Assembly: GCA_964234715.1 (NCBI GenBank) | Contig: OZ174275.1 | Source: Podarcis melisellensis | Taxonomy: Eukaryota | Direction: 5' to 3' (one strand) | Length of the DNA stretch: 64,000 nt | Shown: in pieces, positions 2,286 to 63,975 of the stretch | Numbering within the stretch: position 1 is the first letter of the stretch | Layout: each line of letters opens with the position of its first letter | Made by a program: the position numbers and the translations under genes | The notes under the pieces: generated by a model | Seen by the model: the letters and a program-made list of their open reading frames with translations, nothing else | The model's database searches: none | What the model was told of the DNA's origin: nothing

Positions 2286-2786
2286 TTTGAGTTAGGTATA
2301 GTAACTTCAAAGGGTTAGGTCAGATTCACCTGGCAATTTGGGGCTTTAAAAGAAAATCCTAGCGGTTTCAGGAATGTGGTAAGTAACAAATATACCATTA
2401 GGAGTTCATTCACAATCTCACTTTCCTGCCACATGAGAACAACAAGGGAAAGTAATTTTGTGGGTTTAGAATCTCAAGGTCTAGGCTAGCAATATTTTTA
2501 ATGAAGCTGCCCTGGGCCATACTGATTGACCTGGGATGTGTGAGGAACGTCCTCCACCACTTAGGAACTTCATGGCACACCAGCATTATTTTGCCCAGGG
2601 CAGCCCCAAGCAACTTTCAACCAAATTAGGAGGCGGGGGCATTCTGGCACCATTTTTTCTATAAGAAAGGCACTGGGTGCAGCCATGAGAAGATCAAGCA
2701 CTTTCACTTCCATGTTTAATTAATTACAGTTTAGCATTACATCTGAACACAAAATTGTTAATCTCATGAATGGTGTGTTCAATGTA

Positions 2787-2940
2787 CAGTGGTACCTCAG
2801 TTTATGAACTTAATCCATTCCGGAAGTCCGTTCTTAAACCAAAACCATTCTTAAACCAAGGCGCACTTTCCCTAATGAGGCCTCCCGCCGCCGGCGCCTT
2901 TCCACCATTCGGATTCCGTTCTTAGACTGAGGTAAACTGT
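2787..2940. mobile_element. Truncated Tigger/pogo-like MITE (left end only)
   Basis: TA|CAGTGGTACCTC terminus shared with the other copies in the window. Confidence 0.65.
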
Positions 2941-18910: not shown

Positions 18911-19489
18911 TTATGGGGGCGGGGGACTAGTTTCCCCAGTCTCCTTTATTTGAGTAATTCAACTGTGGAAGCAAAATGCAAAGCCTAAGATCACCTCTAC
19001 GAATATGTTTTTCATTTAAGATTTTAGTGGTAAGCCTGATTACATTTAGAAACCTGTATACCTTTTATCACAATTTTCCAAGACGTTTAAATGGAAGAGC
19101 TTAATGAAATGGACTATAAGACAGAAGCCAGAAGGTTCTCTGCCTTCCCTACAAGCTAATTATTCTTTGAGCAGAATCCATTTTCTGCCAGCTTTTGAGA
19201 GAGATGCTGTTTTTCAGTAGAGTGGAGCTAAATAATTCATATATAAAAATGTTGCCACTTTATCCGAGTAGGAGAGTAGCAATAAGGTCCAAAGCATGTA
19301 TTACAGGGAGCCAAGAAAGATTTCTCACTACTATTGAATAACCAAAGACTGTCTTATTTTTCTTCTTGTTGGCCTGGCGAATAGATAATATTTCTTCCTT
19401 TTGAGTAGGAAAACGGGTTACATTTGACCATCTGCCAAGACATGCTAATGCAGGAAGCTATGCAATAAAATAAAATCAAAATTAAAGTA

Positions 19490-19845
19490 CAGTGGTGCCT
19501 CGCAAGACGAAATTAATCCGTTCCGTGAGGCTCTTCGTATAGCGGTTTTTTCGTCTTGCGAAGCAAGCCCATTGACAGCTTAGCGGATTAGCGCTACAGC
19601 TGTCAAGCGGCTTCCAGCGATCAGCTGTTAAGCGGCTTATCAGCGGAACAGCTGATAAGCGGCTTAGCGGCTTAAGAAAAGGGCGGAAAAAGCGAAAAAA
19701 ACCCGCGGGGGGATGCAAGATTTTTTTCGTCTTGCGAAGCAACCCCATAGGGGAATTCGTTTTACGAAGCGCCTCCAAAACGGAAAACCCTTTCGTCTAG
19801 CGGGTTTTTCGTCTTGCGAGGCGTTCGTCTTGCGGGGCACCACTG
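19490..19845. mobile_element. Tc1/mariner (Tigger/pogo-like) MITE, copy 1
   Basis: TA TSD; 22-bp TIR CAGTGGTGCC(T/C)CGCAAGACGAA; CpG-rich interior. Confidence 0.9.
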
Positions 19846-20372
19846 TAGAGGCATAGAGCAAAGTGAACATGATGTGACTGGAGAATACCTGAAGTGGAAA
19901 CTTGTGCTTTAAGAAAGACTGTACCAGCTGAAGAAAATAAAGTGTGAACCACTTTTCTTTTTTAGTGACCCCACAATGCTGAAGTGCTGAGATTGCTGGC
20001 GAACAATAGCAGAAAGGGTTTTACGCTCATGTCTTGCTTGTGAGCTTCCCATAAGAATCTTGCTGGCCACTGGGGGAAACAGGATGCTAGCCTAGTTAGG
20101 CTTTGATCAGATCCCACAGAGTGGCTCTTATGAGATATACCTCCCTAATCGGAAAGGTGTGACTCAAGTTGCAATTGCATACCCATTTACCTAGAAGTAA
20201 GGCACACTGGACTGTGGGTGTTTTACTTCTCAGTAGGCATGCATAGGATTGCCCTGGTTGCCACCAGAACTGATCAAGAGATTTGAGGCCCTTTCACTTG
20301 TTGCAGAGATAAGGAGCACAGCAAATGTATGCTGTAATATCCAAGGTAGATACATCATAAAATGTGGGTGGA

Positions 20373-21510
20373 GGGGGGCCACTAGGGGGCGCATTGGAAG
20401 ATGGCCGACAATACCATCTCTCCGACCCACACGGGGTAATTAAGAGGCTGTTATGGGAGTAGGCAGCCTCCCTTGTTGCCCCAAGGAAATGGGGAACACT
20501 TGCCTGCTGTGCCCATAAATCACCCCCTAATTCAAAAGAAGGGGGTGAGGGCCCTAGGCAGAATGCCCCCGTGTGGACCTCGGCTCTCCTGGGCGCTGTC
20601 TCTGATCGCGCACTAGTTGCAGCAATTTGGAATAATTAATTACAAAAGAAGCAAATGCACATATTTCAAGTGAATAAGGGGAGTGGTCTGCTAATTTAAG
20701 TGACCTCTGCGAAAGAAGACGACGGGTTGGAGAAACAGGAATATTTTACAATGAAGATACACCAAAGGCGGGGTATGTTGACAACAGGGCTGAATGGGGG
20801 GGGGGACCTTTTTTACTTTTCTTCTATGTGATTTACAAGAACCCCTCCTCATTAGAACCGTCGGTTGAACTGACCCAAGCGGGATGATTAAGATCTGTGT
20901 GGAGATAAACTTTAACCAAAAGTATGCTTTATGGAGACCGAGAAGCAATAAGAGCTTTTGGGAATGGCGCAGCAATTAATTCGGAGTTGCCATCTTGCCA
21001 AAGGATTTATAGCCGGGAAGAAGAACGGATTTGTTTTCAGACTGCATTCCTAGTGAATCTCCTCAGAGGTTTTGAGAAAGGAGGCAGATTGGTGAAGATT
21101 AATGACGCTAAGACTGTTTTGATGTATGGAAGTGATGTTATATGGAAAACGTCTGGATATGGCTACTGAATTAAAAAAAATAATATCCACGCAGGATTAC
21201 AAACTGTTCTAACCAGCTTGCGGAGACTATCAGAGGTCACAAAGAGAAAGAAAAAATATATGAAAATAACAACAAGAGATGTGGAAAAATAATAAGAAAG
21301 GACTGGATAGTACTGTGAACAACATAAGGTTAGATTTGTGGACATTAAAACAGCAGTAAGAAGAAGTTGATTGGATCCGTTCGGAACTTGAAATATGGGT
21401 ACCCCCAACAAAAATTTAAAATTCGGCTGTGTAATTTGGAATTTATGTAATTTGGTTTGATTTGATGTGATTGGTCGGTTAATAAAAATTATTCTTAAAA
21501 AAATAAAAAT
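20373..21510 (+). mobile_element. Full-length ~1.1 kb non-coding L1-dependent retroposon, copy A
   Basis: 5' G-run plus GGAAGATGGCCG; AATAAA at 21481-21486 followed by an A-rich tail; TSD (AT)AAAATGTGGGTGGA at 20357-20372 and 21509-21524; end-to-end homology with 53311-54415; no long ORF. Confidence 0.85.
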
Positions 21511-22034
21511 AAAATGTGGGTGGAGAAAACTGTAACTGGCTCAGTTCCCTGGAGTGTGTATGTACTACATACCTGTCATATACTTGTGATCATTAAAATA
21601 TGCTACTCTCACTAAGATGTAGCATATAGAATAGGCCTAAGACTAAATAGCAAGCATTTCTGAATTCACTCATAGGCTTTAAGATAGCAAGCTTTCTTCA
21701 GTTTCTATTTGCTCTTAAGATATTATGTTAGAGTATCTCAGGAGTAGCCTCTCTATAACAAAGGTTGGTTATGGTCTCACCAAGGATATTTGAACTGATG
21801 ATCATGTAGCAACTTCTTTGTCTTAGGCTTTTCTAATTACTTTAAACTTCTAACAGTTAACTTGGGGAGGGACAATTATCCAGATAATGTTCAAAATAGA
21901 CTTCTACCACCATTCAGAAGAAATATTTACACAAACTGATGCTTTTACACTGATACTATATGTAGTTCACATCAAAGGACATCTCATAAATATCCTGACT
22001 GATAAGACAGGATATTTCTATAATACTCTTGGCC

Positions 22035-24624: not shown

Positions 24625-24942
<318 letters not shown>

Positions 24943-31118: not shown

Positions 31119-31712
31119 ACTTTCTTGGGCTCCATGATCACTGCAGATGGTGACAGAAGTCACGAAATTAAAAGACGCCTGCTCCTTGGGAGAAAGGTGA
31201 TGGCAAACCTAGACAGCATCTTAAAAAGCAGAGACATCACCCTGCCGACAAAGGTCCGTATAGTTAAAACTATGGTTTTCCCAGTAGTGATGTATGGAAA
31301 TGAGAGCTGGACCATAAAGAAGGCTGATCGCTGAAGAATTGATGCTTTTGAATTATGGTGCTGGAGGAGACTCTTGAGAGTCCCATAGACGGCAAGAAGA
31401 TCAAACGCATCCATTCTTAAGGAAATTAGCCCTGAGTGCTCACTGGAAGGACAGATCGTGAAGCTGAGGCTCCAGTACTTTGGGCACCTCATGAGAAGAG
31501 AAGACTCCCTGGAAAAGACCCTGATGTTGGGAAAGACTGAGGCCACAAGGAGAAGGGGACGACAGAGGACGAGATGGTTGGACAGTGTTCTCGAAGCTAC
31601 AAACATGAGTCTGACCAAACTGCGAGAGGCAGTGGAAGATAGGAGTGCCTGGCGTGCTCTGGTCCATGGGGTCACGAAGAGTCGGACACGACTAAACGAC
31701 TAAACAACAACA
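31119..31712 (+). mobile_element. 5'-truncated BovB (RTE) LINE 3' end, antisense to FUT8
   Basis: GSMITADGDRSHEIKRRLLLGRK...LRLQYFGHLMRREDSLEKTLMLGK with in-frame stops; (CAA)n tail; perfect 11-bp TSD ACTAGAGTATT (31108-31118, 31713-31723). Confidence 0.95.
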
Positions 31713-31940: not shown

Positions 31941-32404
31941 TCAGTTTTGGAGGTTGCACCCAAAGTAGTACTTCCCATCAGTGCAAGGATTTTTGCTTGT
32001 GCAACAGAACTTCTGCCTCCCCTCAAGTACCTTCTAAATATGTTCTAGGGGTGGGGGCAGGGCGGGAGGGAGCCTTGCTGCACAAGTGGAAATTCTTGCA
32101 CTGACAGGACTCGTTAATTGGATACCACAGTGAAATTAAACAGATTTTTTCACCTCTTAGCAGTTTGCTATGCCTTCATAGCTTGTAGCCCTAATGAGAA
32201 ATTAAATTTTGCAGAATTTTTATCCACTTCTTGTAAACAGAAACCCATGACTCATATGTGTCATAATCCACCTGCAAATTTAAGACCAAATTGCGAGTTT
32301 TCAGCTGTATCTCATAAGAATTACTATTAGTGGAGCCTTGTTCTACCAACACCTGTTTAGGAAGCATGTATATAAAGCTCAGAAGTTATAGCTATTTGCA
32401 AATA

Positions 32405-32788
32405 CAGTGGTGCCACGCTAGACGAAATTAATCCATTCCGCGATTCTCTTCGTCTAGCGGTTTTTTCGTCTTGCGAAGCAAGCCCATTGACAGCTTAGCG
32501 GATTAGTGCTAGAGCTGTCAAGCGGCTTCCAGAGATCAGCTGTTAAGCGGCTTATCAGCGGAACAGCTGATAAGCGGCTTATCAGCGGAACAGCTGATAA
32601 GCGGCTTAGCGGCTTAGGAAAACGGCAAAAAAAGCAAAAAAAACCCCGCCGGGGGACGCAAGATTTTTTCGTCTTGTGAAGCAACCCCATAGGGAAATTC
32701 GTTTTGCGAAGCGCCTCCAAAACGGAAAAACCCTTTCGTCTAGCGGGTTTTTCGTCTTGCGAGGCGTTCGTCTTGCGGGGCACCACTG
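32405..32788. mobile_element. Tigger/pogo-like MITE, copy 2 of the 19490-19845 family
   Basis: TA TSD, same TIRs and body, one extra 27-bp internal unit. Confidence 0.9.
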
Positions 32789-32892
32789 TAGTTTCAAACA
32801 CAGGTATTCATATAGACATTAAAAGTAAATATGCTATTTGTTTAAATAGCCACACTTCATGTAAAATCACTTGTGTACAAACATGGTCTTAC

Positions 32893-33069
32893 TTGGATTT
32901 TGCCTCTTGCAATAATGAAGGGTCATCTGTAGCCAAATAGACTCGTTTTTTGTCAATATGCATTCTGCGGGAGAGAAGTTGGAAACGTTCTTCAACATGT
33001 ACCATATATTCTTCAATGGGATGAAATGCTGCTTCAGTTCCCACTTTGTCTGTTCTTCGGACATGAATA
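32893..33069 (-). CDS. FUT8: FUT8 coding exon (177 bp) with GDP-fucose-binding motif I ([12 protein letters not shown]) and motif II (VYLATDD)
   Basis: Alpha-1,6-fucosyltransferase motifs intact; AG at 33071-33070 and GTAAG at 32892. Confidence 0.98.
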
Positions 33070-33737
33070 CTGCAATGAAAAGCAAACACAAATTTCTCTT
33101 GACCAGGATTTGTTTGTTTTTTGTTCGTTTGTCCTTTACTTTCATTAGAACGGACTGTAAAATAAATTGGCATTAGAATATATATTATTTTCAGAACAAA
33201 TTTGTCAAAAACTACAGAGCAAGGGCTTGGATTAGTTACATGGCTGAGGGTGGGTGGAGAGAAGTAAAGATTACTAGTCAGTCCTTGAAACCAAATAGAT
33301 GGTTGGAGGCCAAATGCCAATATATTTTACACATGTCACAGTAGAATCACAGCATTATGATTTTGCAAATACCTTCAAGGTACTAATGCGCCACACGGTC
33401 AGCATGGCCTCCTTTTACACACATATCCAGTAGGTTTAAATATAGTCACCAGCTCACAGAATTTAACCTTGTGTGAAAAGACGTTGCATGTATCATAAAT
33501 GTGTATTTGTCAAGAGGGTTCTTAAGGCATTTTTATCACTTCTCTACAGTTTCATCCATACTAAAACATGCCTGCTGAACTAAAACACTGGAGTAAAATT
33601 AATTTTCTCCAGGGTTTCTGGAAAGGAAGCTGTCTTTTATTGGGGTAGTACTATAGTTACTTACTGTTGCTAATTTGATTGTGATTCTGTGGTTTCAATT
33701 ATGGCTTTAATTGTGCTCTGTCTTGTTTTAACTAACT

Positions 33738-35569: not shown

Positions 35570-35865
35570 CCATATTTTTCGGCCAATAGGGCGCACCTAG
35601 TTTTTTTTTGGGGGGGGGATAAAGAAAAAAAAATATCCCCCCCCCCGGCGCAGGGCTAGGGCGGAGGAAGCCCGAGCTTCCCCCGACCCCAGCCCCCAGA
35701 ACAGGCAGCTCTCCACAAGCCGTGGGAGAGCTGCGCGAAGTAACGCAGCTCTCCCACGGCTTGCGGATAGCTTCCTGAAGCCTGTATTCACCCCATAGGA
35801 CACACACACATTTCCCTTTCATTTTTGGAGGGGAAATAGTGCGTCCTATAGGGCGAAAAATACGG
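35570..35865. mobile_element. Tc2-like MITE
   Basis: TA|CCATATTTTTCG ... CGAAAAATACGG|TA termini. Confidence 0.85.
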
Positions 35866-36028
35866 TAGGTTTAGGACAACACCCTTTATTCTCAATGGAT
35901 TTTGAGTTCTGACTTTCTAAGAAGTGTTTCACAGCCTTCTGTGTGAAAAGGAATGCTAAAGAAGGTGAAATGTTCTTGTTTACTCAGAAGTCCTACTAAT
36001 TTTGATATATGACTAAGCATGAATAGGG

Positions 36029-36203: not shown

Positions 36204-36548
<345 letters not shown>

Positions 36549-37050: not shown

Positions 37051-37528
37051 CACATGTTGGTACGGGCATACTAAAATGAAGATTTCCAAGTGACTTGCCT
37101 GACCGCACTATCAAATATTACTGAAGAAAGGCTGGATCACAAAATTTAGAACTTATTGTTGCCCTCAGAGTTCCCAGCTGAAAACCACCCACTCCCAAGC
37201 ACCCATTCTAATTAATATCTTGCATGTGACACCTGTAATATTTCAGAGTTCTGGCAAAAGATTCAGCAGCAACATCAGATATATTTGAGAACACAATAAA
37301 TATTCTAGATTGGTTGCAAACTAAATGACCATTTCACCAGTTCGTCTGTGCCCACTGTTCAAGAACTTATGTAAAATGTTGTATATTTCTGTCAATGGTA
37401 GTTAGCAGATTCATTTAGAGCTTGCTGATCAACATGATGATATCTAATGGGAGCTGGGAGACAGATAAACCCCACAAGCCTAAAACTTAGAACTTTTAAT
37501 AGATGGCATTATATATGGTGCATGAGGA

Positions 37529-37885
37529 AAGGCATGTTTAGCCTGGATAAGAGGAGACTGAGAGGAGATATGATAGCCATCTTTAAATATCTAAAGGGTG
37601 TCACATGGAAGATGGCACAAGCTTGCTTTCTCCTCCTCTGGAGGGTAGGACCAAAACCAATGGCTTCAAGTTGCAAGAAAGGAGATTCCAAGTAAACAAC
37701 GGGGGGGGGGGGAGAGAATTCTGATGGTAAGAGCTGTTCAACGGCAAAACAAACTCCCTCCTTCATTGGACTGTCCTTCATTGGAGGTTTTTAAGCAGAG
37801 GCTGGATGTCCATGTGTCATGGAAGCTTTAGTTGGGATTTCTGCACTGCAAGAACTAGATGACTCTTTGGATCTTTTCCAACTCT
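37529..37885 (+). mobile_element. CR1 LINE 3' end
   Basis: GMFSLDKRRLRGDMIAIFKYLKG C-terminus, then 3'UTR and a degenerate ATTCTAT tail. Confidence 0.9.
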
Positions 37886-51288: not shown

Positions 51289-51588
<300 letters not shown>

Positions 51589-53099: not shown

Positions 53100-54464
53100 C
53101 AGTGGAACCTCATGTTACGTACCGTCCTCCTTGCAAACGCTTCGGGTAACAAGTTCTGCTAAACCGGAAGTAGGTCTCCTGGTAACAAATTTTGCCTCGG
53201 GGTGCAAGCAGAAGTCGCATGCCGGAGGCGCACGTGCAGCGGAAGACGCCATTAGCGAAAGTGCGCCTCATGTTAAAAACGGTTTCAGGATAAGAACGGA
53301 CCTCCAGAACGGGGGGCCGCTAGGGGCGCATTGGAAGATGGCCGACAATACCATCTCTCTGTCTCACGCGAGGTAATTAAGAGGCTGATATGGGAGTATG
53401 CAGCCTCCCTTGTTACCCCAAGGGAATGGGGAACACTGCCTCACCTGCGGTTGCCACAAATCACCCCCGGATTCGAAAGAAGGGGGCGAGGGCACTAGGC
53501 TCACAACCCTCGCGTGGGACGGCTCTCCCTGACGCTGTCTCTGATCGCGTGCCTGGTTGCAGGAGCTCAAAATAAACAATTAGCGAGAAGCTAATTAGCG
53601 AGTTAAGACTGCTAATTGAAGTGACCTCAGTGAAGTCGAGCAACGGGCTGGATTCAACAATATAGCAAAAAGAAGATATATCGAAGATGTTGGTATGTCG
53701 GAACAGGACTGAAGGGGGGGACTTTTCTTTTTTATCTTATGTGAGTACCTAACAATCCCCCCCCCCCCAAGAAGAATCGTTGCAATTACTGATTACAAGC
53801 AGGATGATTAAGAACTGTGTGGAAATAAATTACTACTCAAAGACATGGCTTGTGGAATATTTGGAAAGGAATGAAAGGTCTTTGTGATGCAGTTATAAAA
53901 AGAGACTTGTTGGGGCAGGCCTGGCTACAGGAATCGAGGGGGAGGAGACCAAGGTTTGTTATTATATCGGACTGTGAGTTTGATCTGGCAGAACCCCCTA
54001 AGAGAGACTGACTGGCCTGTGAAGATTAATGGACAAACTTTAAGAATGTTTTGTACGGAAGTGCGCAAATGGTCTCTGTTTGTCTCAATATGGCTCTTGG
54101 AAGAACAGAAAATCCACACAGGATATAACAACGTTTGTTTTCAACCCGCTTGTGGAGACTACCAGAGGTCACAAAGAAAGGAATATATGACAACAACAAC
54201 AAGAAGATGAGGAAAATAATAAAGAGAAGATTGATTAGAACTGTGAATACTATTTGGACAGAAATTGTGAACATTAAAGCAGCAGCAAGAGAGATGTTTG
54301 AATCCCTTTCTGAGCTCGAAGCATGGGTACCCCCAACAAAAATTTTAAAAATTGCCTGTGTAATTTGGATTTAATGTGATTTGATTGGTTTGTTAATAAA
54401 AATGTTTTTTTAAAAAAGAACGGACCTCCAGAACAAATTAAGCTCGTAACTGGAGGTACCACTG
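53100..54464. mobile_element. Tigger/pogo-like MITE (about 240 bp) split by the 1.1 kb retroposon
   Basis: TA|CAGTGGAACCTC ... GAGGTACCACTG|TA; halves at 53100-53310 and 54435-54464. Confidence 0.88.
53311..54415 (+). mobile_element. Full-length ~1.1 kb non-coding L1-dependent retroposon, copy B (antisense in a FUT8 intron)
   Basis: Same 5' end as copy A; AATAAA at 54395-54400 and short A tail; perfect 19-bp TSD AAGAACGGACCTCCAGAAC (53292-53310, 54416-54434). Confidence 0.88.
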
Positions 54465-55034
54465 TACTGTGTCTATGCAATCCCACTTTCTATTGCACAT
54501 TATACCCACCTCAATGGATATTTGTACCAGGTCAGAGACATGTTTTTCACTTCCTACAAAAATGAACCGAGTTGGATTATTACCAACATGACTCATTTTA
54601 GGGAGCCATGCTTCACATGGCATGGTGCATACTTTGCATACAAGAAGGTTGCATCTCAGGTAGAGAAAAGATGGGATTCCTTTTGCTGTGTGCTTTGACT
54701 TATCTAATTGTTTGTGTTAGGTTTTAGTGAGGTTGTTTAACAATACTGTATTGTTTCTATTTATTTTGTTCCATATTACTTTGGGTACTATTGGCAAAGT
54801 GCCAGTTTTAGAAAATTAAAAGTTTTAAATGCATAGCCACACAATCAAACACAATTTTCATGACTCAAAGAAACATGTTAATAACCTTCCCCAGACATTT
54901 CATGATTCTTTGCACATACCAGATCAGTGTACAAGCACATACCAGTGAAATATATACACCAATGTAGTACAGTATTTTTAGAATACTTTCTTTATTGAAA
55001 AATAAATCCCATAGCATAAAATCTCCTGGACCTA

Positions 55035-55400: not shown

Positions 55401-55584
55401 TGGACCTACCTATCCGAAATTTAGCAGGGTTAATCTACTCTTTTGGGGGCTATCTTTTCTTCTAATTTGATGCACTCATCTGTAAAAACCTAATAGCTGT
55501 GTCTGGTTTGATTTCCCAACGCAAGTGAATGGGACTACAGTGGTACCTCGGGTTAATTCGTTAATTCGCAAGTGAATGGGACTA

Positions 55585-55833
55585 CAGTGGTACCTCGGGT
55601 TAATTTGTTCTAGAGGCCCGTTCTTAACCTGAAAATGTTCTTTACCTGAAGCACCACTTTAGCTAATGGGGCCTCCAACTGCTGCCACACCATGATTTCT
55701 GTTCTGATCCTGAAGCAAAGTTCTTAACCCGAGGTACTATTTCTGGGTTAGCAGAGTCTGTAACCTGAAGCATATGTAACCTGTAACCTGAAGCGTATGT
55801 AACCTGAAGCCTATGTAACTCAAGGTACCACTG
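55585..55833. mobile_element. Tigger/pogo-like MITE with duplicated left junction
   Basis: TA|CAGTGGTACCTCGGGTTA ... TAACTCAAGGTACCACTG|TA; internal TAACCTGAAGC repeats. Confidence 0.88.
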
Positions 55834-60942: not shown

Positions 60943-61458
60943 CCGTATTTTTCGTCCCATAGGACGCTCCATCCCATAGGACGCACCTAGTTTTTTTTGG
61001 GGGGGGATAAAGGAATTTTCCCCCCTTTATTTCCCCCCCAAAAGCAGGTCGGGGAAACCGAACCAGGTCAAGGAACAGTGGGATGGCGGCGCTTTGCCTC
61101 CCTGCTGTCCCCCGAGCTTGTGGGGCTGGCCGATGTCTGCCCGGCACAAGGGGCGCACTGCTTCAGGGCGCCCCGCCCGCCAGGCGGCAGGCTTCTATCC
61201 TCAGCGTGGGGAGCCCTGCGGGGAACTCCTGCAGGGCTCCCCACGCTGCGGATGTCTGTCCGGCGTGCGGGGTGCTCTGCTTCAGGGCGTCCTACCCGCC
61301 GGGCGGCAGGCTGCTATCCGCAGCGTGGGGAGCCCTGCGGGACCCCTCTCGCTCTCCAAGCTTCAGCGAAAGCCTGCATTCGCCCCATAGGATGCACCCA
61401 GATTTCCCCTTCATTTTTGGAGGGGGAAAAAGTGCGTCCTATAGGGCGAAAAATACGG
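60943..61458. mobile_element. Tc2-like MITE with internal ~119-bp GC-rich tandem duplication
   Basis: TA|CCGTATTTTTCG ... CGAAAAATACGG|TA; units start at 61132 and 61251. Confidence 0.9.
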
Positions 61459-63975
61459 TAATCAGCAGACTAACTCAACATTGTTGAAAAAGACACAAAC
61501 CATCAGTGCATACTAATAAATTTAGTTCTGAGCAGTAACCAACTCAAACCACTCAATCCATTTTGGGGGGAGGTGACAGACAAAAAACTATGATTGTGTA
61601 TAATTATACCCAGAGTTCATAGCTTAGTTAAAAACTACTTGATCGTCACACAAGAAATTGAACAGGAAAATATCTCCAGTGATTGTATACTTTTCCTGCC
61701 CTTGCATGCATAAATAAATAAATGAATAAATAAATAAATAACTGGCAACTGGTCAAATCAACATCCACTCCCTCAAAAAAAATCTCAGTGAAATTCTCTA
61801 TCACCTTGATAGGCTGGGCTGTGCAGTGCTGAGAATAACTTTGAGCACAATATGTCTATGTGCTACTTGCCATGTACCAACATGAATGGCATTGGAGTGC
61901 ATGTCGGAGAATGCCTGATGTGAACTTCACCTGAGCTAAGCCCAGGACAAACACTCTCAATGGGTTAAGGACAGATTCAACTAGGCTTGCACGAAAACTC
62001 AGCAGGGCAGCTGCCTGGGATTCAAGAGATAGCTGTGAATTGTCAACAGACTAATATTGCCAAATCCCAGAATGCAAAGAACACATCCTGAAGGAGAATG
62101 GCAGAGGAAGGAAAAACAGAATCAAAGCTTAAAGTGACACACAGAGGTCCTATGGTGATGGCAGCAACAATGTTCTCTAAAATTTCCTGGCTAACAATAT
62201 CCAGAATTACTCAACAGGACTCCCACAAATCTTTGCCATATCCTGCAACTGCATTCCCAACATCTCATAGTATATTGTATCAAATCCAAAATACGAACAG
62301 GGCACAATGTTCCCTATCACTATTTTAGTGGAGGATCAATAATTGCCCAATAAATACAGTTATAAGGTAAAATCAGAATGTCAAAGGCTCAATAAACCAT
62401 AAGACCCTGAGTGCAACTGAATAGGAATTCATGGTGAGTATCAGCTTTCATGGAGTTACATAATCTACTCAAGCAGCCGCATAATGTTCATTATAGGGTA
62501 TTTTTAAAATCACATTAGGTAAACCAATTAGATGCAATTGGTCTGTTCAATTATTAGAGAATCTCAAGTTATTTTAGGACTAAATAGTACCTGCCCCCCC
62601 AAAATTTATCTGCTATAATCTTGATGCATGATCCATCTCAGGTTCAGCAAGTCTTTTGCATGCAAAGAGAATGGCACTGGGCTTAGGGCTCTGGTTGCCT
62701 TAGTAAATGCAAACCTCAGGAGACAGAACTATAGTTCAATGGTAGCGCACATACTTTGTATTCAAAAGGTCTCATATTCAATGCCTGGCACCACCAATTA
62801 AAAGAATCAGATAACAAGTGACGGGTAGGAGTGATGGAAATGTACTCTGCCAGAAATACTAGGCAACGACCAGAAGTTAAGATTAAACTGGGATAGATGG
62901 ACATGGTCTGACATGGTATGAGACAGTTTCCAATGATCTCAATGTGCCAGGCCATTATTTAGATATGCCCAGGGGGGTGTTAAATATGTGTTAGTGTGTA
63001 AGTGGAAGTGAGTGGGGATATATTGCACCTTAGTCTACAAAATTTAGAACAGGTTTGACATCTAAACATTTGCACTGCAAATAAGCGTTTAGCTGTACTT
63101 GCTTTCACTTTATACTGAATGAAACAAATAAATCTTTAGTAAAAGCAGGAATTATTGTGTTTAATATATATAACATATAACATTAAGGTCATCAACATCG
63201 GTAGCAAGTATTTTCACCAACTCAGAAATCCAATCTGCATCTGGAGCCAATCACATACATCTGCAAAACATCATAGAAGTATCAGCTTTACAGAAATGAC
63301 CAGGGTTGTAAATAATGATCCACATGCTATTAACTTTAATGCCAGATCTAGATCAGGCAAATTTAATATGTTCTTGTTGTCAAGGTAAGTGTACAGTTAC
63401 TGAACATTCAGGTAAACAAATTAATCCAGTTAGAACGCAAGACTGGCAAAAAATATATCATTTTCAGTATTACAGCCGACTTAGATTTGGTTTTATAGCT
63501 TATGAGATTTTTGCACCTTGGCAGTTATTCTCATGATGAAATATACACCCAGACAGACCACCTCTTTAACAGTAAACATATCCAAAGAAATCAATTTAGT
63601 ATAAGGCAACAAATTATATAGCTTTATTTTGTATAACTTTTAACAGGCCAAAGAGGAAATTCCTTAGTGTAGTCTCATGAGGCTACCAAAATTTTTGTTA
63701 TGTGAAATTAAGTTCTCAAGTTTAATTGCAAATATCATTTTCTATTATTCTCTCTATGTTCCAGAACCAGTCATATATATAAAGATTGCTAAATGAAAAT
63801 ATAGGTGCCCAAGCCACCAATATTAGAGGAAACATACAAAGTTGAGGAACATGTGGTTCCAAAAAAAAGGAGTATGACCTTCAGAGTCATGGCTGATTAA
63901 GACATCTAATATGCAAGATTCTAAGCAAAGCCCATATATTCAAAAAATAAATGCATCCCTATAGTAACCCCTTCA

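Follow-up and report, generated by a model that had tools for sequence, protein, structure and literature searches.

To our knowledge, little has been documented outside mammals on elements that depend on L1 and are not SINEs. HAL1 of mammals is L1-dependent and polyadenylated, measures 1-2 kb, has an L1-like 5′ end and flanking target-site duplications, and encodes ORF1p. The SVA and LAVA elements of hominoids, again 1-2 kb long and polyadenylated, are non-coding, transcribed by RNA polymerase II (Pol II) and mobilised by L1 in trans. Rodent B2 is a Pol III, tRNA-derived SINE with a CTCF site inside its body. Bipartite non-autonomous LINEs of the ORF1-absent type, which retain just the 5′ and 3′ parts, are Pol II-transcribed and depend on a parent LINE, are a described class (Kojima 2018, PMC5786205). 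In lizards, L1 probably moves other RNAs in trans as well: among non-mammals, tailless retropseudogenes have been found in the green anole alone, and a relaxed, trans-acting L1 system has been predicted for lizards (PMC5322556).

Two full-length members of one retroposon family of ~1.1 kb, both on the plus strand, lie within the 64-kb window (the whole stretch of DNA that was analysed), which seems to come from a squamate:

20374..21510, plus strand: full-length retroposon copy A (1,137 nt), with an end-to-end BLASTN match to copy B
53311..54415, plus strand: full-length retroposon copy B (1,105 nt), inserted within an older interspersed repeat

The reading that we favour, with moderate confidence, is that they belong to a Pol II-transcribed, non-autonomous, L1-mobilised retroposon family without ORF1. 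Nucleotides 1-1129 of copy A and 1-1105 of copy B form a single BLASTN match (69% identity, E 1e-106), and global MAFFT alignment of the two gives 70% identity over ungapped columns with 25 indel runs. The end-to-end homology claimed in an initial annotation of this DNA is thereby borne out, with the qualification that identity along the length is very uneven. The same annotation had reported a common G-run start and 37 shared nucleotides, and both are exact: GGGGG(G)CC opens the two copies at an identical start base, directly abutting the 5′ duplication in each, and the 37-mer a few bases further in matches without a mismatch. A 27-nt part of this 37-mer occurs in the window at positions 20389 and 53326 only. 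No further copy or fragment besides A and B was found within the 64-kb window by nhmmer with all filters off, and neither copy is similar to the other repeats of the window.

Each copy has the anatomy of a target-primed insertion, as laid out below.

20357..20373, no strand: 5′ target-site duplication of copy A, 17 nt, with a 15-nt core from 20359, at T/AAAA
21481..21486, plus strand: AATAAA polyadenylation signal of copy A, from motif search
21497..21510, plus strand: A-tail of copy A, 14 nt, AAAAAAATAAAAAT
21509..21525, no strand: 3′ target-site duplication of copy A, a perfect direct repeat of 20357-20373
53292..53310, no strand: 5′ target-site duplication of copy B, 19 nt, at T/AAGA
54395..54400, plus strand: AATAAA polyadenylation signal of copy B, from motif search
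54412..54415, plus strand: copy B's A-tail, 4 A, or 6 when the two A that open the duplication are included
54416..54434, no strand: 3′ target-site duplication of copy B, a perfect repeat of 53292-53310

The duplication of copy A is ATAAAATGTGGGTGGAG, which measures 17 nt, or 15 nt if its leading AT is counted as tail; that of copy B is AAGAACGGACCTCCAGAAC, perfect over 19 nt. Both copies end in an A-tail 10-11 nt past their own AATAAA. Previously asserted features of the ends, namely AATAAA followed by an A-tail and perfect duplications at T/AAAA and T/AAGA, are thus all present, with signals at 21481 and 54395, tails of 14 nt (A) and 4-6 nt (B), and duplications of 15-17 nt (A) and 19 nt (B). 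The near-absent A-tail of copy B counts against our L1-mobilised-family reading. The hallmarks of target-primed reverse transcription (TPRT), namely a duplication of ~7-20 nt, a TT/AAAA-like site and an A-tail after a polyadenylation signal, are found in both copies, in agreement with the earlier assignment of the duplications and target sites to L1 endonuclease and TPRT. Judged by these features, the copies were probably moved by L1 enzymes, and from the insertion signature we infer L1 as the mobilising partner.

Fragments of Bov-B and CR1-like elements are present in the window. They are what would favour mobilisation by a LINE clade other than L1 (Bov-B/RTE, CR1, L2 or R4), an explanation that we group with duplication at the DNA level and regard as very improbable. 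With RTE and CR1 partners, tails are microsatellite-like and duplications short or missing, and the retroposon tail resembles none of the Bov-B or CR1 fragments in the window. An A-tail after AATAAA, duplications of 15-19 nt and T/AAAA-type targets are instead the signature of L1 endonuclease and TPRT (PMC5381506, PMC5322556). Segmental duplication is excluded by the flanks and duplications of copy A, which differ from those of copy B and mark independent insertion sites.

The unevenness of the alignment follows a layout of two conserved ends around a divergent middle:

20374..20623, plus strand: GC-rich (56%) conserved 5′ domain, with 84% identity to copy B and hairpins common to both copies
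21182..21480, plus strand: conserved 3′ domain rich in A (up to 49%), with 58-82% identity to copy B
21441-21472, plus strand: (ATTTG)n micro-repeat of copy A, within the 3′ domain

Divergence between A and B is 16% over the first 240 columns, 39% over the middle 620 and 23% over the last 300 (chi-square 50, P 1e-11), with identity of 80-88% across the first 240 nt, dropping to 37-68% in the middle and reaching 58-82% over the final 330 nt. Neutral decay after insertion would run evenly along an element. Had each copy drifted by 5% since insertion, the probability that both duplications would still be perfect is 0.03, and at 10% it falls to 0.0008. The duplications having stayed perfect, the greater part of the ~30% difference between A and B predates insertion; it therefore arose mostly in the source lineages, in which both ends were more constrained than the middle. 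The CpG observed/expected ratio is 0.36-0.79 in the elements versus 0.27 in the window. These figures point to at least two recently active sources with one layout, that is, to young copies of what would be old lineages. The greater constancy of the ends suggests that the promoter and 5′ RNA domain, like the 3′ end, have been under selection. As read from this one alignment, the divergence pattern is that of a retroposon family with putative subfamilies and not of decayed pseudogenes of one gene. The family status proposed earlier is upheld by the two copies, their independent insertion sites and the at least two source lineages to which they point.

The copies do not encode protein. Comparison of their open reading frames revealed none common to both; 21 of the 25 indel runs between A and B have a length that is not a multiple of 3, and mismatches are spread evenly over the codon phases (110/94/115), without codon periodicity. 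A Pfam search with ten ORF translations (E up to 1) returned chance-level matches only, with no Transposase_22. The PDB as searched includes human L1 ORF1p and ORF2p, and the three longest plus-strand frames (E up to 10) matched neither. Enterotoxin and cholera toxin B chains that came up in the PDB search, at E 0.2-1, were rejected as noise. ORF1, whether intact or degraded (coiled coil, RRM, CTD), was not found in either copy. The earlier statement that no long ORF is shared is thus confirmed on the two copies by the ORF test it had called for, through out-of-frame indels, lack of periodicity and chance-level Pfam and PDB results.

Features of Pol III-transcribed elements and of other element classes were likewise not detected. 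ARAGORN predicted no tRNA in either copy, no Rfam family reached E < 0.03 or came near its gathering score in a search with E up to 1, and this agrees with the reported lack of a tRNA, 5S or 7SL head. Each copy contains 6-7 internal runs of at least four T, at which Pol III would stop. The repeat search of the copies returned no LTR, TIR or VNTR, as had been noted for TIRs and LTRs, and no tandem array except the small (ATTTG)n in copy A. Given the lack of coding capacity the element is not HAL1-like, and given the lack of a Pol III head together with the internal T-runs it is not a classical SINE. Of the description 'neither SINE nor HAL1', the exclusion of both classes stands; the implied novelty of the kind does not, since an ORF1-absent class is already recognised (PMC5786205).

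Within the first 70 nt of each copy lie the candidate promoter motifs and a very short reading frame:

20379..20392, plus strand: CTCF-like core CCACTAGGGGGCGC of copy A, +6 to +19, predicted from sequence
53317..53329, plus strand: degenerate CTCF-like core CCGCTAGGGGCGC of copy B, differing from copy A by an A-to-G substitution and one missing G
20398..20407, plus strand: YY1-like box AAGATGGCCG of copy A, +25 to +34
53335..53344, plus strand: YY1-like box AAGATGGCCG of copy B, +25 to +34 as in copy A
20401..20439, plus strand: 12-codon mini-ORF MADNTISPTHTG of copy A, ending at TAA and not taken as coding

The copy A core CCACTAGGGGGCGC is identical to the first 14 nt of CCACTAGGGGGCGCTA, the canonical CTCF site given in PMC5694663. 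Its counterpart in copy B is degraded, so the CTCF core may not be essential. In mammals, the L1 start reads G2-6(A/C)G2AGNCAAGATGGCGGA, and its CAAGATGGC segment is the YY1 site on which transcription initiation critically depends (PMC5381506). The retroposon's AAGATGGCCGA, after the 5′ G-run, resembles this mammalian start in a motif comparison with the same source, and the YY1-type box that the initial annotation placed after the 5′ G-run is confirmed to that extent (PMC5381506). The two heads have in common a G5-6 start and AAGATGGC(C/G)GA; they differ in that the retroposon box lies further from the start, at +25 to +34, and in that a canonical CTCF core stands between G-run and box. This likeness is one of motifs and does not imply homology. 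In copy A the YY1-like box also forms one arm of a small hairpin, AGATGG...CCATCT. YY1 and CTCF are predicted to bind these motifs. That two diverged copies begin identically at the 5′ end implies a fixed transcription start, and because the motifs lie downstream of it, a new copy would carry its own promoter. It is the motifs and the shared 5′ end that point to transcription by Pol II from an internal promoter.

YY1 boxes of the AAGATGGC type, just 3′ of the start and overlapping an ATG, are common in housekeeping gene promoters. In both copies the mini-ORF starts at the ATG of the YY1-like box and is 12 codons long (53338-53376 in copy B). These features would suit processed pseudogenes whose parents are a few related cellular Pol II genes, non-coding or with a tiny ORF. 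L1 would have retrocopied them by accident, and the copies would have no promoter function of their own. We consider this explanation decidedly unlikely. Four of the 12 mini-ORF residues differ between the copies, no ORF remnant is left, and Pfam, PDB and Rfam gave no match. Being 30% apart and young, the copies would further require two or more diverged source genes sharing one intron-less 1.1-kb layout, and their insertions, 33 kb apart, are denser than expected for retrocopies of host genes.

A more serious contender, if still an unlikely one, is that A and B are dead-on-arrival by-products, that is, spliced or internally deleted RNAs of two L1 families that lost their ORFs, like human SpIREs, and founded no lineage of their own. 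The start is L1-style, with a G-run and then AAGATGGC(C/G)GA. The conserved 5′ domain of ~240 nt is close in length to the 0.23-kb 5′UTR of the anole clade 2 L1, and lizard L1 5′UTRs are conserved across very divergent families (PMC5381506). Lizard L1 3′UTRs are rich in AT and contain poly-C, poly-T or short repeat tracts (PMC5381506), and the retroposon has UTR-like tracts of its own, G-run, T-rich and C-run sequences at 20795-20850 (A) and 53714-53765 (B) as well as the (ATTTG)n. Spliced L1 retrocopies are documented in human (PMC5860796), and ~30% divergence is typical between lizard L1 families. Against this explanation, A and B are alike in architecture, nearly equal in length (1,137 and 1,105 nt) and collinear through the middle; independent deletions would not recreate one junction, and only conserved splice sites would. 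Traces of ORF1 and ORF2 are absent. Anole L1 heads read GACTTCCGGTGN8ATGGCG (clade 1) and GGGNGCTGCGCATGC (clade 2) (PMC5381506). Neither string occurs in the window within 3 (clade 1) or 2 (clade 2) mismatches, and the retroposon heads are unlike both, a weak argument in that the consensus is the anole's and may not be that of the host.

Under the favoured reading of an L1-mobilised family without ORF1, a cycle can be proposed in which RNA polymerase II would transcribe a source copy, and the promoter signals just 3′ of the start (the CTCF-like core at +6 to +19 and the YY1-like box at +25 to +34) would travel with the RNA. The transcript would then be cleaved and polyadenylated 10-11 nt past its own AAUAAA and would borrow, in trans, the reverse transcriptase and endonuclease of an autonomous L1. 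These enzymes would nick T/AAAA-like sites, with target-primed reverse transcription leaving duplications of 15-19 nt. At least two source lineages, ~30% apart, would have been running this cycle recently.

Whether copies A and B share an RNA structure was addressed by folding. The 5′ domain folds better than shuffled sequence in both copies (z -4.0 for A, -2.2 for B), and its consensus fold contains 78 pairs, of which four are changed on both sides (compensatory) and none is broken; with partners slid by 1-3 columns, merely 42-50% of cells pair. The clearest compensatory case is a long-range helix formed by CCACACGGGG/CCCCGTGTGG in A versus TCACGCGAGG/CCTCGCGTGG in B. A less circular test took the structure from one copy and scored the changes in the other against random placement. 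With the structure from B, 8 pairs were broken versus 19 expected (P 0.0002) and 4 were compensatory (P 0.012); with the structure from A, the 19 broken pairs versus 21 expected were no better than random. These predictions are suggestive of a conserved fold of the 5′ domain. RNAalifold also drew long-range helices between the conserved islands of the middle, with four shared helices of at least 8 nt, a result reached in 2 of 300 column shuffles. Parallel-complement matches, which are physically meaningless, were as frequent (5 vs 4), and the middle helices were rejected.

A further reading of the element as a whole, speculative and in our estimate rather unlikely, makes it a structured non-coding Pol II RNA that is not derived from L1, aids its own capture by L1 and spreads CTCF and YY1 sites. 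If that were true, the compensatory changes in the ~240-nt 5′ domain would point to a selected fold, and the domain would help to capture L1 proteins much as the Alu fold does. The CTCF core at the extreme 5′ end would seed new CTCF (and YY1) sites through the reptile genome, and the element would be the Pol II equivalent of B2, a SINE with a CTCF site.

Set beside the described systems, the retroposon most nearly recalls in its workings the ORF1-absent bipartite LINEs, the '-N' derivatives of Repbase. The two are alike in the lack of an ORF, a Pol II-type transcript (predicted here), a polyadenylation signal of their own, dependence on an autonomous LINE (likewise predicted here) and 5′ and 3′ parts more constrained than the middle. 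They are unlike in that the described elements are defined by identity of both ends with a named autonomous partner. By analogy, then, the retroposon would work like the ORF1-absent class, strict membership of which requires both ends to be homologous to the partner L1; no L1 for an end comparison lies within the 64-kb window. This ORF1-absent, LINE-dependent kind is already known, and the retroposon's kind is not new. The overall interpretation in the initial annotation accordingly stands for the L1-type hallmarks, the missing ORF, the missing Pol III head and the family, and gives way where it presented the kind as new. The family itself may already be present in Repbase or Dfam.

With HAL1 the retroposon shares its apparent L1 dependence, polyadenylation, flanking duplications, size class and L1-like 5′ end; unlike HAL1, it has no shared ORF and no similarity to ORF1. 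It resembles SVA and LAVA as a non-coding, polyadenylated element of their size class with probable Pol II transcription and probable mobilisation by L1 in trans, and differs from them in having no VNTR and no recognisable composite of other repeats, and in its host lineage. Like the CTCF-bearing rodent B2, it is mobile and brings along a consensus CTCF core from which new sites could arise. Its own site, in contrast to that of B2, belongs to a Pol II-type element, sits at the extreme 5′ end and, in copy B, is degraded.

Searches elsewhere returned nothing for the element. Its 24-nt head and 23-nt tail motifs had no exact match in metagenome contigs, which may contain no lizard non-coding DNA. 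Six ATG-start ORFs of the element were absent from the protein collection searched, and an open minus-strand frame of the 5′ domain yielded no candidate in the protein search, lizard non-coding DNA being perhaps unrepresented in both cases. Five element motifs did not occur in a full-text literature search.

Should at least two old lineages indeed have been kept active, they would show that a lizard L1 supports long-lived non-coding parasites, and they would offer a natural comparison for learning what features, besides a poly(A) tail, an L1 requires in trans of an RNA. Since the CTCF core and the YY1 box both fall within the first 35 nt, a potential insulator or looping site could arrive with every new full-length copy. 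Such delivery would bear on the evolution of chromatin architecture in reptiles. If, on the other hand, the ends turn out to be plain L1 UTRs and Repbase or Dfam already lists the family, the finding would amount to routine repeat annotation.

The older repeat that hosts copy B has two paralogs in the window that preserve the insertion target:

55583..55779, minus strand: intact paralog of copy B's host repeat, with the uninterrupted target ...GGTTAAGAACGGGCCTCTAGAACAAAT...
2784..2899, minus strand: second intact paralog of the host repeat, with the target likewise uninterrupted

Both read through ...TTAAGAACGG(A/G)C(C/T)TC(C/T)(A/G)GAA... and so provide an independent view of the empty site of copy B, with TT/AAGA at the target. 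FUT8 exons were observed on the minus strand of the window; copy B is intronic in FUT8, and copy A lies ~3 kb past the FUT8 stop codon. Copies A and B are thus antisense to FUT8, an orientation expected for elements with a strong poly(A) signal.

Both copies of the 1.1-kb retroposon, copy A and copy B, are antisense to FUT8 (alpha-1,6-fucosyltransferase). The exons below were located by Pfam and peptide strings: one exon matched FUT8_N_cat in Pfam (E 3e-25), and the remainder were recognised from peptide strings typical of FUT8.

24628-24942, minus strand, FUT8 exon
32892-33070, minus strand, FUT8 exon
36204-36548, minus strand, FUT8 exon
51289-51588, minus strand, FUT8 exon

In the middle of the element (20700-21240 in copy A, with the matching stretch of copy B), the conserved islands form two nested complementary pairs, GTGACCTC with GAGGTCAC and CTGTGTGGA with TCCACRCAG. 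Four antiparallel helices of at least 8 nt are common to both copies, as against five meaningless parallel-complement matches. The antiparallel class is no commoner than this control, and these helices were rejected as unsupported.

Copy B splits an older host repeat, which has two paralogs in the window.

53130-53310 and 54416-54480, host repeat, split by copy B
55560-55790, minus strand, host-repeat paralog
2770-2910, minus strand, host-repeat paralog

Judged by its ends, the host repeat seems to be a MITE, bounded by terminal inverted repeats, and not a SINE, because ...GAGGTACCACTGTA forms its terminus and CAGTGGTACCTCGG is found at the opposite end of its neighbours (55520-55609).

Two further frames resemble LINE fragments.

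31389-31700, plus strand, open frame ending in ...RRRGRQRTRWLDSVLEATNMSLTKLREAVEDRSAWRALVHGVTKSRTRLND
37441-37692, plus strand, frame containing ...FSLDKRRLRGDMIAIFKYLKG...

The first ending we take to be the kind of C-terminal tail with which Bov-B/RTE LINE ORFs typically close, a clade different from the L1 inferred for the 1.1-kb elements; the second frame looks similar to a CR1-type LINE 3' ORF end.

Other repeats were also observed.

19485-19848 and 32400-32791, interspersed repeat, two copies, 93-96% alike
61129-61341, GC-rich tandem pair, period 119 nt, 85% alike

The interspersed repeat is built on palindromic GCGGCTTATCAGCGGAACAGCTGATAAGCGGCTTA units, and one copy lies ~500 nt upstream of copy A. 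Separately, a run of 136 N at about 17.7 kb marks an assembly gap or masked stretch. The tandem pair sits within overlapping ORFs of 134-158 aa, for which Pfam returned no match, and adjoins a ~90-nt segment common to 35778-35867 and 61370-61460 (86% alike); this is probably another repeat family.
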